From Oikopleura dioica (Eukaryota > Animalia > Chordata), in contig OU015566.1 in assembly GCA_907165135.1 (NCBI GenBank), forward strand, positions 10,726,001 to 10,790,000: a DNA stretch of 64,000 nt. Direction: 5' to 3'. Both the position numbers and the translations under genes were made by a program. The notes beneath the pieces are model-generated. The model was not told the origin of the DNA. It was given only the letters and a program-made list of their open reading frames with translations, and did not search any database. This document shows positions 3,885 through 14,159 of this stretch, piece after piece. Position 1 is the first letter of the stretch; every line of letters begins with the position of its first letter.

Positions 3885-4140
3885 CGCTTTGTCAGATTAG
3901 TGCAAATCTTCATTCATTTACTTTTCAATTGTGTACCTATCTTGAGCTTCAAGACATGTTTCAACTTTCTTTTTCAAAAAACAAGAACCACCTGAAAATA
4001 ATTTAAAATAAAGTTAACTCACGTTCATATTTAAAAAATGAAAACCACTTGTGTGAATTCTTGCAGGAATAAATTTATCTTCTACGGATTAACGATCCGG
4101 GATTATCTGTTGAAATATCTGGGTAGAGAAACCTGTGTAC

Positions 4141-4454
4141 CAGGGTTCGGTAATTTGAGCTCACGCTAAAACTCAAGGAAACAAAGCTTGAGACTCACGT
4201 TTTTTAATTTGAGTTTTGAGAACTCAGAGATGAGAGCTCGCGTGAGGAATCAATTCTGGCGATCCATAAGCCAATCAAGGAAGCGCTCGCTTAATTTGAG
4301 TTTTGAAAACTCAAAACTCTCAAATCTCCCAAAAACTCAAAACTCTCAAATCTTCTCAAAATGATTTCTCAAGTCACTTTGAGTTCTCAATTTGAGGAAA
4401 TTTGAGCGTCTAGCCAAAATGAGTTTTAGCTTGAGCTCAAATTACCGAACCCTG
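4141..4454. mobile_element. hAT-type MITE
   Basis: TIRs CAGGGTTCGGTAATTTGAGCTCA...TGAGCTCAAATTACCGAACCCTG; perfect 8-bp TSD CTGTGTAC (4133-4140, 4455-4462); internal AACTCA/TGAGTT repeats. Confidence 0.92.
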
Positions 4455-4923
4455 CTGTGTACGCACTTGCGTCCGGGTCCTGATTCAGGACTCCTGAAAT
4501 AGCCTCGATAAAAGCCGCGTAGTAAATGCGCGTAGTTAATGATACGCGATCTGCTAAAGACCTTGACTCAGGTTTTTACACAGTATGATAAACCCAACCA
4601 AAGGATCCAAAAATAACATTTACATTCCTGAAGTCGAGGGGAACCCTCTTTTTCGAGATAGTCTGAAGCTACTCTAGAATAGACCCATCGACGGTGGGCC
4701 ATCGCCAAAACATCAAAAATAATCCCTTAGTAAGGGAGATGTCCAAGGTGGCTAAAACTCGGCAAGAGACCGAATTCGAAGACAATAGATTTTTTCGAAT
4801 CTCCCGCTTGGAAACTCGAAGTCGCCGTCGATTGGGGCCCGCCAGATTTGGCGCCATCCCCTATTCCGCGCGCTGATTTTTGTTGAATTCGAATTGAAAT
4901 TTTGAAATCTCGACGATTACAGA

Positions 4924-7900
4924 ATGCTACAGAGATTGTCTAGGACAGCACGAGCAACACGAATTCAAATAGCAAAAAGAGGAAATGCAACGCTGAGCTT
5001 CGAGGGAAAGGTTGCAGTTGTAACAGGTTTGGAAAAGTTCCTTTTCTATCTATTTTTCAAAAATAAGGTTCATTAGTAAAGTTGTTACTTATCAGGGGCT
5101 GGGAATGGACTTGGTAGAGAATACGCCCTTGAACTTGGAAAACGAGGAGCAAGCGTCTTTGTCAATGACTTTGGCGGTTCCGTTCACGGTGCAGGTATTC
5201 GTCATTTCCGCTTCGTTTGGGCGATATTAAAAATTTTATCGTCAGGTGCAGGCATATAAATTCGCTTGGCGATTTTCGCCGAAAGCGAAAGCGAAGCGAA
5301 AGCGAATCGAAAATTTCGCTTTCGCCCCCCCGAAAATGACACTCCTGATTTTCGCTTCGCTTTCGCTTTTTGTCCCCGATTTTCGCCAAAAATTCGCTTT
5401 CGCCGAGGCCTCGCTTTCGCCAAATTTTCGCTTATGGCGAATCTTCGCCAAAATTTCGCTTTCGCCAAGGCCTCGCTTTTGCCAGGAGTTTGCTTTCGCC
5501 AAAATTTCGCCAAATTCTCGCTTTCGCCAAGAGTTCGCTTTCGCCAATATTTGGCCGAATCTTACTTTTTTTTCTTTCAAAGCGGTATAAATAGGGGAAT
5601 CACTTAAAATTGAGCTCTTTTTCTAGCTTAGTAGGGTTTAATACAGTTTTAGGACACCTAGAAGCTGGGGATCATTTGGCTACTGATAGAGGGGGTGATC
5701 TGAGGGCATTTAGATACCTCCGAAGCTGGGGTCGGCAAGCCACCAAGCGATGGTTGGTCACCAACCGTTGGTGGAGGTGGGTGGGTTGACAAGAAAATCA
5801 AATTTTCACTGTTGGGGGTGGGTGGTGTTTGGTGGGTTATGGATTCTTTCGTAAGCGTTTTTCTGACCCCAAAATTTATAGACTAGAAGTTGATTACACC
5901 GATTCTTTGGTCATTTTTAACCAACAGAAGGAAAACGAAGTAGAGGTAAAGTCATTTCAGATAGAGAACTGATCTTTTTGAAAGATTTCGCCAAAAAAAT
6001 TTGGCCGAAAAATCTTTCCCACCACTTCCCACCATTTCAGATTTTTTAGGCTTGAGGGTGGGGTGGGTGGGTTGCCCACCACCACTCACCCACCATCCAC
6101 CGACCCACCATTTCCACCATTTTTTGCAGACCCCAGCTCCGAAGTCCCATAATCTGGCCAACTTCGTAAATGGGAATTTTTGAAAGACTAAGACTTTTAG
6201 GGGCTGCCACCTATACTCGATGTTAGCCCAGGCTCTGGCTGTCATTTTGAGCTCTAGAAAAGTAGGGAGGAGATGGGGTATCTTGGGAGCTAGGGGCTCT
6301 TGAAGTCGGAGAACTCGGCAAAAATTGAGTACTTTTTCCAAAAAGTCTTTTTGTCGATTTCAATTCATTTAAAAATGTTGAAGTTGTCATTTGGGGTCAT
6401 CTGAGGTCAGGTCGGGTCAGTTATCAGAGTTTTCTGAATTTTCAATTATTTTTGACCAAGAGTGACCTCAGTTGACCCTAAACGACATCTTAAACACTTA
6501 TGAATGAATAAACGTCGATTGAAAGAATTCAAATCGTGTACTTTTTGGGAAAAAGTACTCAATTTTGGTCGAGTTCCCTAACTTGAAGAGCCCCTAGCTC
6601 CGCAGATACCCCACCCCCGCCCTACATTTCTAGAGCTCAAAATGACTGCCAGAGCCTGGGCCTTCAAAAATTCTCGGTTTTAGAAAGCCCAGAAGCTGAG
6701 CTTTCATTTGGACGGGTATCCCATATCAAGGGGTCAAGGCATTCATGGGACCGGAAGTTCCGAAATCGGAACTAGATCTCTTCAATCGAATTTTCGAGTA
6801 GAGGAAAACGGCTCAAATGAAAGCTCAGTTTCTGGGTGTTCCAAAACTGTGTCATAATTATTATACTTAAGGACCCCCCCGTCAACAATTTTCGAAAAAT
6901 CTTTTTTCGGAATTTCAAAATTTTGACCCCGGAAATGGATTCTACAGGTCAAAAAACGATTTAGAGGCTTAATTTTTTGGGGGTCTATCTCGACTCTAAG
7001 ACTCTCAAAATCGCGTTTGAAAATCGGACTTTTGACGAAAAATGATGAAAGTCCAACTTTTGCTAAAATTTTGGATTTTTATTTGTCAAATATTGGTCCG
7101 AACAAGTTTTACTGATGAATTGAACTTCCAGGCACACTAAGAAGCCAAAATATGGCTATTTTGAAATTTTCGATTTTTGAAGAAAATTGTTGACGGGGGT
7201 CCTTAATTAGAGAAATGGGTCGAAGTTTAATCTTATTAGATCGCTTTCAATTTCGGCGAAATTTCGCTTTCGGCGAATTTTCGCTTTTGGTAAATTTTCG
7301 CTTTCGGCGAATTTTCGCTTTGGCGAAATTTCGCTTTTGGCGAATTTTCGCTTTTGGCGAATTTTCGCTTTTGGCGAATTTTTCGCTTGGCGAATTCGCT
7401 TTCGCTTCGCTGTGCAAGATAGGCGTTCGCTTCGCTTTCGCTTCGCTTTTTGGTTGGAAGAATTTTTCGCTTTCGCTTCGCGTTCGCTTTGGGTTTTCGA
7501 ACGAAATTTATATGCCTGCTGCCACCTATACTCGATGTTAGCCCAGGCTCTGGCTGTCATTTTGAGCTCTAGAAAAGTAGGGAGGAGATGGGGTATCTTG
7601 GGAGCTAGGGGCTCTTGAAGTCGGAGAACTCGGCAAAAATTGAGTACTTTTTCCAAAAAGTCTTTTTGTCGATTTCAATTCATTTAAAAATGTTGAAGTT
7701 GTCATTTGGGGTCATCTGAGGTCAGGTCGGGTCAGTTATCAGAGTTTTCTGAATTTTCAATTATTTTTGACCAAGAGTGACCTCAGTTGACCCTAAACGA
7801 CATCTTAAACACTTATGAATGAATAAACGTCGATTGAAAGAATTCAAATCGTGTACTTTTGGGAAAAAGTACTCAATTTTGGTCGAGTTCCCTAACTTGA

Positions 7901-10900
7901 AGAGCCCCTAGCTCCGCAGATACCCCACCCCCGCCCTACATTTCTAGAGCTCAAAATGACTGCCAGAGCCTGGGCCTTCAAAAATTCTCGGTTTTAGAAA
8001 GCCCAGAAGCTGAGCTTTCATTTGGACGGGTATCCCATATCAAGGGGTCAAGGCATTCATGGGACCGGAAGTTCCGAAATCGGAACTAGATCTCTTCAAT
8101 CGAATTTTCGAGTAGAGGAAAACGGCTCAAATGAAAGCTCAGTTTCTGGGTGTTCCAAAACTGTGTCATAATTATTATACTTAAGGACCCCCCCGTCAAC
8201 AATTTTCGAAAAATCTTTTTTCGGAATTTCAAAATTTTGACCCCGGAAATGGATTCTACAGGTCAAAAAACGATTTAGAGGCTTAATTTTTTGGGGGTCT
8301 ATCTCGACTCTAAGACTCTCAAAATCGCGTTTGAAAATCGGACTTTTTGACGAAAAATGATGAAAGTCCAACTTTTGCTAAAATTTTGGATTTTTATTTG
8401 TCAAATATTGGTCCGAACAAGTTTTACTGATGAATTGAACTTCCAGGCACACTAAGAAGCCAAAATATGGCTATTTTGAAATTTTCGATTTTTTGAAGAA
8501 AATTGTTGACGGGGGGGTCCTTAATTAGAGAAATGGGTCGAAGTTTAATCTTATTAGATCGCTTTCAATTTCGGCGAAATTTCGCTTTCGGCGAATTTTC
8601 GCTTTTGGTAAATTTTCGCTTTCGGCGAATTTTCGCTTTTGGCGAAATTTCGCTTTTGGCGAATTTTCGCTTTTGGCGAATTTTCGCTTTTGGCGAATTT
8701 TTCGCTTGGCGAATTCGCTTTCGCTTCGCTGTGCAAGATAGGCGTTCGCTTCGCTTTCGCTTCGCTTTTTGGTTGGAAGAATTTTTCGCTTTCGCTTCGC
8801 GTTCGCTTTGGGTTTTCGAACGAAATTTATATGCCTGGTCAGGTGGATCAACATCGGCAGCAGACGCGGTGGTCGCCGAGATCATCGCAGCTGGCGGCTC
8901 AGCCAAGGCAAACTATGCTAGCGTCGAACAGCCCAGCGAAATCATTGATCCAGTCTTGGAGGAGTTTGGGAAAGTCGATATTCTCATCAACAATGCGGGC
9001 ATTTTGAGAGACAAGAATATCCTCCGGATTAGTCAAGAGTGAGTATCTTTATTTGAGACCGAATTTACTACTGAACTGCTTGCGGTTTTCTGCTATTATT
9101 AAATTTGATTGAAGATGTTGATTTTCTGGAGACAACAACGATTTTTTCGTCATAAAAATTTATTAAACAAAGCGCAAGGATAAATCAACTTCTGCGTACC
9201 TAAAAATGACTTGGTCTATTTGAGGGAACAAAGAACTATGCTGACTGTTCTCTAGAGACTGGGACGACATAATCTCCATCCACCTGACTTCCGCCTTCAA
9301 GCTCTCGCAGCAAGTCTTCCCAGTGATGAAGCAGAACAAATTCGGCAAGATTATCAACACTACATCCGCATCAGGCCTCTACGGCAACTTCGGGCAAGTA
9401 AACTACTCCGCCGCCAAGATGGGCCTCGTTGGATTGACAAAAACACTGTTTTTTTTAGGTTGGCCCATCATTTGTCCTTTATAGGCTCTTAACTGGTAAG
9501 AGATAGGACCATATGAACAATAGAAAACTTGTAGAGGAGGGTTTGGAGGTGGTGCAGAGGGGGTTGAGAATTTCAAGAGGTCACGTGGTTATGACGTAAT
9601 AGGGGCCCAAAGTTGGGAAAGTCGAAAATTGAGAATTTAAGGTCATGGGGCCATTATAATTTAACATTTTAAATGAAAAATAAGTCATGTGACATCGATG
9701 ACTCATTGATGGTCCTCCGGAGGATACAGCTGGTGGAAGAACTTTGCTGGAAGACCAACACAAATTTTAATTTTCTAAAAAATAATATTCATTCATATGA
9801 TAGATTTTATCATGTGACTAAAGCTAACATTCCAGAGGTCCTCCGGAGGACTCAACTACTGGAAGAAATTTGCTGGAAGAACAAAAAATTCTTTTTCTTT
9901 TTTTAAATTTAAGGGGCTTGACGGCCCTTCGGGCCGTTTCAGCCCCGTTCCTTGATTTTTAAATTTAAGGGGCTTGACGGCCCTTCGGGCCGTTTCAGCC
10001 CCGTTCCTTGATTTTTAAATTTAAGGGGCTTGACGGCCCTTCGGGCCGTTTCAGCCCCGTTCCTTGATTTTTAAATTTAAGGGGCTTGACGGCCCTTCGG
10101 GCCGTTTCAGCCCCGTTCCTTGATTTTTAAATTTAAGGGGCTTGACGGCCCTTCGGGCCGTTTCAGCCCCGTTCCTTGATTTTTAAATTTAAGGGGCTTG
10201 ACGGCCCTTCGGGCCGTTTCAGCCCCGTTCCTTGATTTTTAAATTTAAGGGGCTTGACGGCCCTTCGGGCCGTTTCAGCCCCGTTCCTTGATTTTTAAAT
10301 TTAAGGGGCTTGACGGCCCTTCGGGCCGTTTCAGCCCCGTTCCTTGATTTTTAAATTTAAGGGGCTTGACGGCCCTTCGGGCCGTTTCAGCCCCGTTCCT
10401 TGATTTTTAAATTTAAGGGCTTGACGGCCCTTCGGGCCGTTTCAGCCCCGTTCCTTGATTTTTAAATTTAAGGGGCTTGACGGCCCTTCGGGCCGTTTCA
10501 GCCCCGTTCCTTGATTTTTAAATTTAAGGGGCTTGACGGCCCTTCGGGCCGTTTCAGCCCCGTTCCTTGATTTTTAAATTTAAGGGGCTTGACGGCCCTT
10601 CGGGCCGTTTCAGCCCCGTTCCTTGATTTTTAAATTTAAGGGCTTGACGGCCCTTCGGGCCGTTTCAGCCCCGTTCCTTGATTTTTAAATTTAAGGGGCT
10701 TGACGGCCCTTCGGGCCGTTTCAGCCCCGTTCCTTGATTTTTAAATTTAAGGGGCTTGACGGCCCTTCGGGCCGTTTCAGCCCCGTTCCTTGATTTTTAA
10801 ATTTAAGGGGCTTGACGGCCCTTCGGGCCGTTTCAGCCCCGTTCCTTGATTTTTAAATTTAAGGGGCTTGACGGCCCTTCGGGCCGTTTCAGCCCCGTTC

Positions 10901-13900
10901 CTTGATTTTTAAATTTAAGGGGCTTGACGGCCCTTCGGGCCGTTTCAGCCCCGTTCCTTGATTTTTAAATTTAAGGGGCTTGACGGCCCTTCGGGCCGTT
11001 TCAGCCCCGTTCCTTGATTTTTAAATTTAAGGGGCTTGACGGCCCTTCGGGCCGTTTCAGCCCCGTTCCTTGATTTTTAAATTTAAGGGGCTTGACGGCC
11101 CTTCGGGCCGTTTCAGCCCCGTTCCTTGATTTTTAAATTTAAGGGCTTGACGGCCCTTCGGGCCGTTTCAGCCCCGTTCCTTGATTTTTAAATTTAAGGG
11201 GCTTGACGGCCCTTCGGGCCGTTTCAGCCCCGTTCCTTGATTTTTAAATTTAAGGGGCTTGACGGCCCTTCGGGCCGTTTCAGCCCCGTTCCTTGATTTT
11301 TAAATTTAAGGGGCTTGACGGCCCTTCGGGCCGTTTCAGCCCCGTTCCTTGATTTTTAAATTTAAGGGGCTTGACGGCCCTTCGGGCCGTTTCAGCCCCG
11401 TTCCTTGATTTTTAAATTTAAGGGCTTGACGGCCCTTCGGGCCGTTTCAGCCCCGTTCCTTGATTTTTAAATTTAAGGGGCTTGACGGCCCTTCGGGCCG
11501 TTTCAGCCCCGTTCCTTGATTTTTAAATTTAAGGGCTTGACGGCCCTTCGGGCCGTTTCAGCCCCGTTCCTTGATTTTTAAATTTAAGGGGCTTGACGGC
11601 CCTTCGGGCCGTTTCAGCCCCGTTCCTTGATTTTTAAATTTAAGGGGCTTGACGGCCCTTCGGGCCGTTTCAGCCCCGTTCCTTGATTTTTAAATTTAAG
11701 GGGCTTGACGGCCCTTCGGGCCGTTTCAGCCCCGTTCCTTGATTTTTAAATTTAAGGGGCTTGACGGCCCTTCGGGCCGTTTCAGCCCCGTTCCTTGATT
11801 TTTAAATTTAAGGGGCTTGACGGCCCTTCGGGCCGTTTCAGCCCCGTTCCTTGATTTTTAAATTTAAGGGGCTTGACGGCCCTTCGGGCCGTTTCAGCCC
11901 CGTTCCTTGATTTTTAAATTTAAGGGGCTTGACGGCCCTTCGGGCCGTTTCAGCCCCGTTCCTTGATTTTTAAATTTAAGGGGCTTGACGGCCCTTCGGG
12001 CCGTTTCAGCCCCGTTCCTTGATTTTTAAATTTAAGGGGCTTGACAAAGGCTGGGAAATCTGAGTTGATCATTCTCAGTTTCGTCCCCAACCCCACCCAC
12101 ACCCATGGATATAAAAATTCAGGTTATCCCTTGTTTCTTGCTTAATTATGGTTTTCATTTTTCATATTTTTTTAGTCTTCCACCATTTGTTTTCAAGGAA
12201 AAAGTCCTCCGGAGGACCTCTGTGACGTCAGATTAAGTCACATGACAAAAATTCTAATTTTTGCAATTGTTAATTGTTATACAAAAGAAAATTTTTTTTG
12301 TCTTCCAGGAACGGTCTTCCACCAGGTGAGTCCTCCGGAAGAGCTATGATGATTCATCTAAGTCACATGATTAATAATTATTAAAAAAACTATAAATAAA
12401 AGGTTCATATGGCCTAAAATTCTCCAATTCCGACTTTACCAACTTTACCCCCTTATTACGTAATAACCACTTGACCTCTAGAATTTCTAAACCCCTCTGC
12501 ACCACCTCCAAACCCTCCTCTACAAGTTTACTATTGATCATATGGTCCTATCTCTTACCAGTTAAGAGCCTATAAAGGACAAATGATGGGCCAACCTAAA
12601 AAAAACAGTGTTAAAGTCAATCGCCATCGAAGGGAGAAAAAACAACGTCCATGCGAACGCCATTGCCCCACTTGCGGCGAGCAGGATGACCGAGAAAGTC
12701 TTCCCAAGCGTCATGCTCGAGAAGATGGATCCCAAATTCGTCATGCCCCTTGTTTTGCCACGAACAGGTCAAATAGAACATACAAACAATGACAAAGTAA
12801 CGGATTCACAATTTTTTTTATGGAAAGCAATTTTATGGACAAAGTAAATCAAGACCATAAATCAAAATTTTGTTTATCTTCATAATTTCAGGGTTGATTT
12901 CTGTCTCAAAGATTTGTCAAACTGATCCTTCTTTCTAAGCTTGCGGCTTTTTCTGTGCCCCCCATTCTTCTATGATTTTTCTAATATCACCTTTTTAAGG
13001 GACCCGGGCGAGTAACGTGAAGTCCAACTTCACGCGCCCGCCATTGATCTTTTTGAAAAGCTTTTTCGAAATTTCTTTTTGCTAAACATATCTTCATTCT
13101 CTCAGCTTTCACCTCCCATTTTCAGATTTTTTATATCATTATTAATTCTTGAGCTAGGATGAATAAAAGAAGCGCAACTTCAAAAGGATTCAACTCCTGC
13201 AAACTTCATTTTATTTTTATGAAACCAGCACCATTGAAAAGCCCATTAAATTCTGAACAGATTCCACTTAATGCGCTAAGCTGAAACTGTACTTATTGCC
13301 CTTAACGCGCTGATAAACAAAAGAAGTTAGCGCTCGAGGCTCGGCAGGACGCTCCGATCGGGCTATTTTGGGGTATTTTGGGCTCCCGGGACATGATTCC
13401 CGCTTGGCGCGCGCTAAGTTATCTTGTTTATCTAACCTTTATCGCAAATGAGTACAGTTTCAGCTTAGCGCATTAAGTGGAATCTGTTCAGAATTTAATG
13501 GGCTTTTCAATGGTGCTGGTTTCATAAAAATAAAATGAAGTTTGCAGGAGTTGAATCCTTTTGAAGTTGCGCTTCTTTTATTCATCCTAGCTCAAGAATT
13601 AATAATGATATAAAAAATCTGAAAATGGGAGGTGAAAGCTGAGAGAATGAAGATATGTTTAGCAAAAAGAAATTTCGAAAAAGCTATTCTAAAAGATCAA
13701 TGGCGAGCGCGTGTAGTTGGACTTCTCGTCACTCGCCCGGGTCCCTTAATGAAAAAGGGATCCTTAGGTGGCTAAATTGGACTATTCTTAAATATTCTTT
13801 GACCATCGAAAAGTACCTCTGCCACGAGTCCTGTTCAGAAACTGGCTCCGTCTTCGAAGTAGCCGCTGGCTGGGCTGCGAAGATTCAAACCGAGAGCGCT

Positions 13901-14159
13901 GCCGGCGCCGTTTTCGCAAAATCCAAAGGCGCGGGTTAATTCAAACTCTTGCAAAGAAACTAAAAATCGATGCATGAGACCGGAAAGGGACGACTTTGCC
14001 AAGTGAGGCGTAAAATCTGAAACCCATCGAAAAGAGGAAGCGACGCTGGAAAGTGTGCAGCAACATTTTGAGGCAATGTGCGATTTTGAAAGAGATACAG
14101 TCAAGCTGGACTCGTTACAGGAGGCGACGATTCGGGTTATGGACGCGATAATGAAATAG
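4924..14159 (+). CDS. Stand-alone 3-hydroxyacyl-CoA dehydrogenase (SDR, HSD17B4/MFE-2 N-terminal domain type), interrupted by large TE insertions; functional status uncertain
   Basis: Segments about 4924-5026, 5096-5194, 8843-9038, 9256-9441, 12616-12757, 13814-13930, 14034-14159 give VAVVTGAGNGLGREYA, VNDFGG, DILINNAGILRD, SASGLYGNFGQVNYSAAK, EGRKNNVHANAIAP, YLCHESC..FEVAAGW; ends DAIMK-stop. Confidence 0.9.
5721..6141. mobile_element. Nested inverted-repeat element with GGTGG/CCACC-rich interior
   Basis: CGAAGCTGGGGTC ... GACCCCAGCTCCG imperfect TIR; no clear TSD. Confidence 0.5.
6226..6661. mobile_element. Palindromic MITE nested in the hAT element (second copy 7541-7975)
   Basis: GCCCAGGCTCTGGC.GTCATTTTGAGCTCTAGAAA ... 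TTTCTAGAGCTCAAAATGACTGCCAGAGCCTGGGC; arms complementary over more than 150 bp. Confidence 0.8.
6871..7202. mobile_element. TTAA-TSD MITE with GG termini (Kolobok-like); second copy 8185-8520
   Basis: TTAA|GGACCCCCCCGTCAACAATTTTC ... GAAAATTGTTGACGGGGGTCC|TTAA. Confidence 0.85.
9442..12612. mobile_element. 3.2-kb foldback/TIR element inserted in a coding exon, carrying a satellite array
   Basis: About 73-bp perfect TIR AACACTGTTTTTTTTAGGTTGGCCCATC..., degenerate arms to about 450 bp; 3-bp TSD AAA; removal restores TTG ACA AAG TCA (LTKS). Confidence 0.93.
9900..12045. repeat. Tandem array of about 38 copies of a 56-bp hairpin-containing unit
   Basis: Unit TTTTTAAATTTAAGGGGCTTGACGGCCCTTCGGGCCGTTTCAGCCCCGTTCCTTGA; the only variation seen is GGG vs GGGG. 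Confidence 0.98.
12999..13745. mobile_element. TTAA-TSD foldback MITE with GGG termini (Kolobok-like), intronic
   Basis: TTAA|GGGACCCGGGCGAGT ... ACTCGCCCGGGTCCC|TTAA; about 300-bp near-perfect inverted arms. Confidence 0.92.

Follow-up and report, generated by a model that had tools for sequence, protein, structure and literature searches.

A hAT-like transposon insertion that duplicates a splice acceptor in a private allele of Oikopleura dioica

That DNA transposons can give birth to introns, with one splice site taken from the target-site duplication (TSD), is established (PMC11282704, PMC9860276). Among such cases, the introners of Micromonas and Aureococcus (Huff, Zilberman and Roy 2016, cited via PMC9860276 and PMC11282704) are non-autonomous elements with terminal inverted repeats (TIRs), whose duplication puts a splice dinucleotide at the edge of the element and thus makes precise removal from RNA possible. 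A likewise non-autonomous element with the same edge property is present in the stretch of Oikopleura dioica DNA analysed here (the window: 64,000 nucleotides, C4:10726001-10790000 of a 64,281,565-bp assembly in 19 pieces), where a hAT-like transposon lies on the acceptor of intron 2 of a dehydrogenase gene. However, as far as the cited accounts describe them, introners interrupt exons and give rise to new introns, and they are present in hundreds to thousands of intronic copies, whereas the window element struck an existing acceptor, so that the intron count stays constant, and belongs to a family of approx. 13-19 copies (only about 13 complete copies and six single ends) with unrelated target sequences; the window copy is, moreover, known from DNA sequence alone. 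Because no new intron was made, the window case falls outside the class of transposon-born introns. In the initial annotation of the window, AGGT duplication by a TSD had been named as an established model of intron gain.

Transposon-derived introns have also been reported in a larvacean, Fritillaria borealis (Henriet et al. 2019, cited via PMC11282704 and PMC13326754). In this member of the same animal class, the introns derive from miniature transposons, with TIRs and duplications at the intron-exon boundaries, and the spliceosome is tolerant of odd introns. In contrast to the single GT-AG site of a private O. dioica allele considered here, the Fritillaria introns, as portrayed in these sources, are fixed, species-wide, mostly non-GT/AG and located at new positions, and duplicated U2AF subunits assist in their processing.

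Two further systems are instructive. In maize Ds/dSpm alleles and in C. elegans Tc1 alleles, transposons are spliced from mutant pre-mRNAs, mostly at cryptic sites and with imperfect products, and the alleles are usually leaky. As in these alleles, the effect of the window insertion depends on the efficiency with which splice sites nearby or in the element itself excise it; however, a perfect wild-type junction is on offer here, because the duplication copies the acceptor. The zero-nucleotide recursive sites of Drosophila (Ubx and others) are conserved and RNA-backed, with a strong pyrimidine tract and a near-consensus GTAAGT. They share with the window a juxtaposed AG/GT (the slash denotes a splice junction) inside a would-be long intron, which reads ..gtcAG/GTgcag at 5244-5247. 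Unlike them, this site is restricted to the window allele, regenerates a weak donor (CAG/GTGCAG) and is read from the DNA.

The insertion on the acceptor and its empty sites

It is probable that the insertion represents a recent, polymorphic, non-autonomous hAT-like transposon in the reference haplotype, and that the resulting allele is weakened or null. The reference in question, OKI2018_I69 (64.3 Mbp, 19 scaffolds, longest 17.1 Mbp, N50 16.2 Mbp), is a Nanopore-based assembly of a single sequenced male with a heterozygosity of approx. 3.6%, the haplotypes of which were merged with HaploMerger2 (PMC8008620). In the host gene, which is read on the forward strand, exon 2 (5096-5194) ends with ..GAGNGLGREYALELGKRGASVFVNDFGGSVHGA followed by a G, its last bases being ...GGT GCA G. 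The native intron 2 (5195-5245, 51 nt) follows, with the donor GT at 5195-5196 and the acceptor AG at 5244-5245 in the context ..ttatcgtcAG, and exon 3 (8843-9038) opens with GT GGA TCA. A staggered 8-bp cut across this acceptor copied gtcAG/GTG to the far side of the element. Accordingly, the TSD GTCAGGTG is found at 5241-5248, where it contains the native acceptor AG and then GT, and again at 8838-8845, where splicing to its AG (8841-8842) would recover the frame. The element in between (5249-8837, forward strand) begins with the TIR CAGGCATATAAATT (5249-5262) and ends with its exact reverse complement (8824-8837; 14 nt, perfect). A splice between 5194 and 8843 would leave the frame unchanged and yield exactly the wild-type junction, although intron 2 would then measure 3,648 nt instead of its native 51 nt. 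On direct reading of the sequence, all coordinates given in the initial annotation were correct, as were its statements that the TSD lies across the acceptor of a 51-nt intron and that the distal splice would be in frame.

Empty sites were reached by a word search with exon 3 alone, which led to short reading frames in marine metagenome assemblies and from these to their contigs. The comparison with empty-site haplotypes that had been proposed for this locus could thus be made. In nine environmental or reference sequences, which represent at least three O. dioica lineages, the intron is uninterrupted and GTCAGGTG occurs once; of the sequences compared, the window alone has the element at this locus. 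Four wild contigs (L071-L074; from European Nucleotide Archive and Tara Oceans samples) share 97-99% identity with the window in the region of the gene and read ...cacggcgcag/gtaatcgtcatttccgcttcgtttgggcgatattaaaaattttatcgtcag/gtggatcaacatcgg..., or, at intron 2, gcag/gtaatcgtc...ttttatcgtcag/gtggatcaac. Their alignment to the window stops at 5248 and restarts at 8838, with an overlap of 8 bp. The uninterrupted intron is also present in a lineage that is approx. 85% identical (L076) and in the Bergen-type lineage (L075, L124, L171 and the Bergen reference locus, L081). A scan of metagenomes with a 16-base pattern for the occupied site contributed L124 and L171 to these empty sites, and none of the matches listed, most of which arose by chance, was occupied; this absence carries little weight. 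Within the assembly there is no empty-site haplotig, both flanks being single-copy. The donor of intron 2 is GTATTC in the window allele and GTAATC in the wild alleles (position 5198).

The native junction is set by natural spliced sequences from databases, with the exons searched one by one. A metatranscriptome cDNA contig (L082) aligns to 5093-5196 of the window and then to 8840-9038, and encodes a protein (P0143) that reads ...VNDFGGSVLGAG/GSTSAADAVV... across the junction; a second spliced sequence (P0025) reads ...HGQG/GSSTAAD.... Since the empty-site sequences carry the 51-nt intron with one GTCAGGTG, the intron is older than the insertion. The number of introns is therefore unchanged, and at most intron 2 has been enlarged from 51 to 3,648 nt. 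The insertion is an ordinary polymorphic transposon insertion, which is unusually well documented by exact empty sites from wild plankton DNA.

Family and internal structure of the element

Whole-genome searches with each end revealed at least 13 complete copies of the family. Perfect 8-bp duplications flank 12 of the 13 other complete copies, and in the remaining one 7 of the 8 positions agree. The duplications found in the family are AAGTAAAT, CGTGCGCC, TCTGTGGC, CTTCTATA, GATCCAGA, GATAAACT, GTCTCGGC, TCTATACC, ATTCGCCC, CATTGAGC and GGGGTGAC, to which six single ends add the target sequences CTTCGGGC, CCTAGGCC, CCCAAGAG, ATCACTCT, TCGGGAAG and CCCTGTTT; right-end matches that share only the 17-nt internal repeats and not the TIR (L040-L051) were left out of this compilation. 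A possible AGGT bias among the TSDs, which the initial annotation had put forward as a check, did not emerge: AGGT occurs at one of 19 family ends, namely that of the window copy, while base composition predicts approx. 0.3 of 19, i.e., what chance would give.

On its structure, the element fits the hAT superfamily, in agreement with the initial annotation. The 8-bp duplication extends across the family, the 14-nt TIR is conserved in all copies and begins with CAG (hAT ends typically start with C/TAG), and 17-nt subterminal repeats of the TTTCGC type are present. The weak hAT target consensus nTnnnnAn was not recovered, with T at position 2 in four and A at position 7 in two of the 12 clean duplications, although the sample is small and the feature a soft one. 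No reading frame in the window copy or in the longest copies (L064, L069) matches a transposase. The hAT dimerisation domain (PF05699) was detected at nine places in the genome; those elements start with CAGGGTGTCAAATCG and do not have the TIR of the window element, and with such different ends they are improbable candidates for its autonomous partner. One family copy (L011, G000:C5:5007356; left flank ..ggcttgacggcccttcgggc) is inserted into a 56-bp satellite, which also fills the foldback element found in exon 4 of the host gene (see below).

The canonical element is approx. 2.0 kb long, and the closest copy (L067) is 97% identical to the window copy over 5249-6870 plus the right end. Two features that no other family copy has are present in the window copy. 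A nested miniature element (6871-7202) is flanked by a TTAA duplication (6867-6870 and 7203-7206), and a 1.3-kb tandem duplication, the second unit of which (7519-8837, forward strand) repeats 6204-7518, leaves an internal right TIR at 7505-7518 and a repeat of the nested element at approx. 8185-8521. The two units differ by six homopolymer lengths and zero substitutions, so that the duplication is either very recent or an artefact of the Nanopore assembly. Thus, the outer boundaries of the 3.6-kb element that had been described are secure, whereas its length includes a segment that may be artefactual. Whichever origin applies, the argument about the splice sites is unaffected.

Acceptor choice and the state of the allele

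The initial annotation held that the second AG had lost its native T-rich tract, which measurement contradicts. At -40..-3, the copied acceptor (8842) is 58% pyrimidine and 40% T, with an upstream AG-free zone of 61 nt, compared with 60%, 42% and 49 nt for the native one (5245), and the other introns of the gene reach only 42-55% pyrimidine. The tract at the copied acceptor is supplied by the (TTTCGC)n right end of the element. Given this similarity in pyrimidine content, the copied acceptor could plausibly be used in splicing. Furthermore, the element ends pair at -75 kcal/mol, versus -40 +/- 5 for shuffled sequences, and in a transcript folded in this manner the two acceptor copies would be set a few nucleotides apart.

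In O. dioica, the median intron is 49 nt long and 11% of introns are non-canonical (PMC8008620). The insertion has left both the first AG and the native branch region intact, at the 51-nt distance from the donor that the species prefers; most transcripts would therefore be expected to splice from 5194 to 5246 and to run into the element. The product of this splice, G/GT GCA GGC ATA TAA, reaches a stop at 5257-5259 after four codons, and sense-strand AATAAA hexamers at 6507 and 7822 might cause early polyadenylation. A minority of transcripts may use the copied AG at 8842 and so regain the wild-type junction through a 3,648-nt intron. As the dominant route, we lean towards the proximal AG with its truncated product; substantial use of the distal AG is a less probable but serious candidate, while two-step recursive removal is unlikely.

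The acceptor is not the only site hit by an insertion. Coding exon 4 is divided into a first part (9256-9441), which runs to ..GLT plus the AA of a Lys codon, and a second part (12616-12757; ..SIAIEGRKNN...PLVL, from comparison with L071 and cDNA) by a private foldback element of 3,171 bp (9442-12612), with termini AACACTGT8AGG.., a 3-bp AAA duplication and a core of 56-bp satellite. The empty site in L071 reads GGA TTG ACA AAG TCA, and natural proteins read GLTKSIAIEG. This insertion, absent from the initial annotation, matters as much for the protein as the acceptor insertion. If spliced out at a GT (9459) and an AG (12608), both within its terminal repeats, the foldback element would leave behind 24 nt, in frame, directly downstream of the catalytic YSAAK motif. 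Two more private insertions accompany it: a hAT-like miniature element of 314 bp upstream of the gene (4141-4454; TIR CAGGGTTCGGTAATT, 8-bp duplication CTGTGTAC at 4133-4140 and 4455-4462) and a TTAA-flanked foldback miniature element in the intron after exon 4 (12999-13745), where L071 has a single TTAA. All three are absent from the wild contigs (L071-L074, or L071 for the last). In total, four private insertions are packed into what corresponds to approx. 2.2 kb of the wild-type contig, the next 2.5 kb of which is free of them. An allele with such a load is probably weakened or null, and it may be tolerated through heterozygosity, through two paralogues, or both; the alternative is that all elements of the gene are spliced out.

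Two other explanations of the insertion itself can largely be set aside. That all or part of the insertion reflects misassembly in a Nanopore-based, haplotype-merged reference is very improbable. The homopolymer-only differences between the 1.3-kb units are the typical residual Nanopore error pattern, and a tandem duplication seen in no other family copy is suspicious as well, but the doubt is confined to this internal duplication: perfect TIRs, an 8-bp TSD without mismatch and an alignment overlap of exactly 8 bp with the empty sites are not what a misjoin would produce. Still further from consideration is the idea, raised by the initial annotation, that the insertion made a new intron by AGGT duplication in the manner of introner-type elements. 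The duplication does hold AG/GT, and introns of transposon origin with a duplication-derived splice site are documented (PMC11282704, PMC9860276). However, the intron exists without the element at the same position in all empty-site sequences, in three lineages including the Bergen reference; the AG of AGGT is intronic and its GT exonic, so that no exon was split; AGGT is found at a single family end of 19; and the family comprises only approx. 13-19 copies. Intron gain at intron 2 is ruled out by the empty-site alleles.

More weight should be given to the view, tentative as it is, that splicing takes the element out of the pre-mRNA in full, with the protein unchanged, either by skipping of the first AG or in two steps via a zero-length exon at AG/GT, so that the insertion would be effectively neutral and intron 2 approx. 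70-fold larger. The exactly wild-type 5194-to-8843 junction, the pyrimidine content and AG-free zone of the distal acceptor, and the strong pairing of the element ends, which could unite both copies, all speak for it, as does the habit of O. dioica of splicing unusual introns (PMC8008620), one cDNA-backed non-GT/AG intron being present in the host gene itself. These points must be set against a native AG that retains its own branch region and is encountered first, a length of 3,648 nt in a species with a 49-nt median intron (PMC8008620), two sense-strand polyadenylation hexamers within the element and an allele found in none of the nine other locus sequences; moreover, the exon-4 insertion would remain to be dealt with. 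A weakened or null allele is thus preferred, although several observations weigh against it: by eye, the regenerated donor CAG/GTGCAG is no weaker than the allele's own CAG/GTATTC, the copied acceptor is compositionally equal to the native one, and all exons are intact, which is compatible with an allele that still functions and equally with a null of very recent origin. A broader and rather improbable extension would be that O. dioica routinely neutralises genic transposon hits by splicing, with the hAT-like element removed via its copied acceptor, the exon-4 element via GT..AG in its terminal repeats and a third already intronic. The locus would then show, while still polymorphic, how transposons enlarge introns and give rise to new ones in a chordate, possibly by way of a zero-length exon.

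Hits on acceptors by transposons are to be expected by chance: given the density of approximately one acceptor per several hundred bases, about 1 in 100 random 8-bp duplications should include an acceptor AG. The value of the locus lies in its being a natural test case, in which one pre-mRNA holds an identical acceptor at 51 nt and again at 3.6 kb from the donor; the introns of the host animal are extremely short, and its spliceosome is unusually tolerant. The questions that this allele could address are how an acceptor is chosen and whether a gene can be rescued by a target-site duplication, and its interest would rise only if allele-specific RNA showed precise removal. The locus also calls for caution, since genes of a haplotype-merged reference can hold private, possibly disabling insertions; therefore, the gene models of the window reference should not be taken as the norm of the species.

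The host gene

The host gene is a dehydrogenase-only relative of peroxisomal multifunctional enzyme 2 (MFE-2, HSD17B4), of the N-terminal type of short-chain dehydrogenase. Its closest named protein is CBY22098.1 of O. dioica (P0144), which fits exon by exon, as does the spliced P0143. In Pfam searches with single exons, PF00106 (adh_short) matches exons 3 and 4, and the first part of exon 4 scores 64 bits. Exon 1 (4924-5026) begins with the ATG at 4924 and encodes a presequence-like N-terminus, its codons having been compared with L071. Exon 2 is covered by the cDNA alignment described above, and exon 3 encodes GSTSAADAVV...LRISQ in 64 codons identical to those of L071. The last two exons (13814-13928 and 14035-14159, stop codon at 14157-14159) follow from the alignment of the same cDNA contig. 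Over 317 codons, the exons differ from L071 by three synonymous and three non-synonymous changes and contain no stop or frameshift. The gene occupies 9,236 bp in the window versus 1,524 bp in the Bergen reference, i.e., it is six times longer; the median gene length in the species is approx. 1.5 kb (PMC8008620). Two paralogous dehydrogenase regions are located at C1:7381159, within a 782-codon open frame, and at C5:10193761.

Some minor features of the gene may be added. The window allele encodes Phe (TTT, 5158-5160; ..GASVFVND) where all other lineages have Val or Ile (..GASVVVND). Variants that set the alleles apart lie at 5158 (T or G), 5188-5190 (GGT in the window allele, otherwise GGC), 9355 and 12626. 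The last intron (13929-14034) is a cDNA-backed GC-AG intron (..AKSK/EEATLESV). The intron after ..PLVL (12757-13813 in the window, 3502-3688 in L081, 1570-1877 in L071) is non-canonical, yet cDNA-backed, with both L082 and P0143 giving PLVL/YLCH. Its ends are CC..AG in the Okinawa type, or GC..AA when shifted by one base, and TC..AG or GT..AA in the Bergen type. In the Bergen annotation, CBY22098.1 omits the 'VL' of PLVL, apparently forcing a GT donor. An 8-mer, TG(C/T)CACGA, is located at the 5' edge of this intron and again 8 nt into the following exon, the variant base being matched within each lineage.

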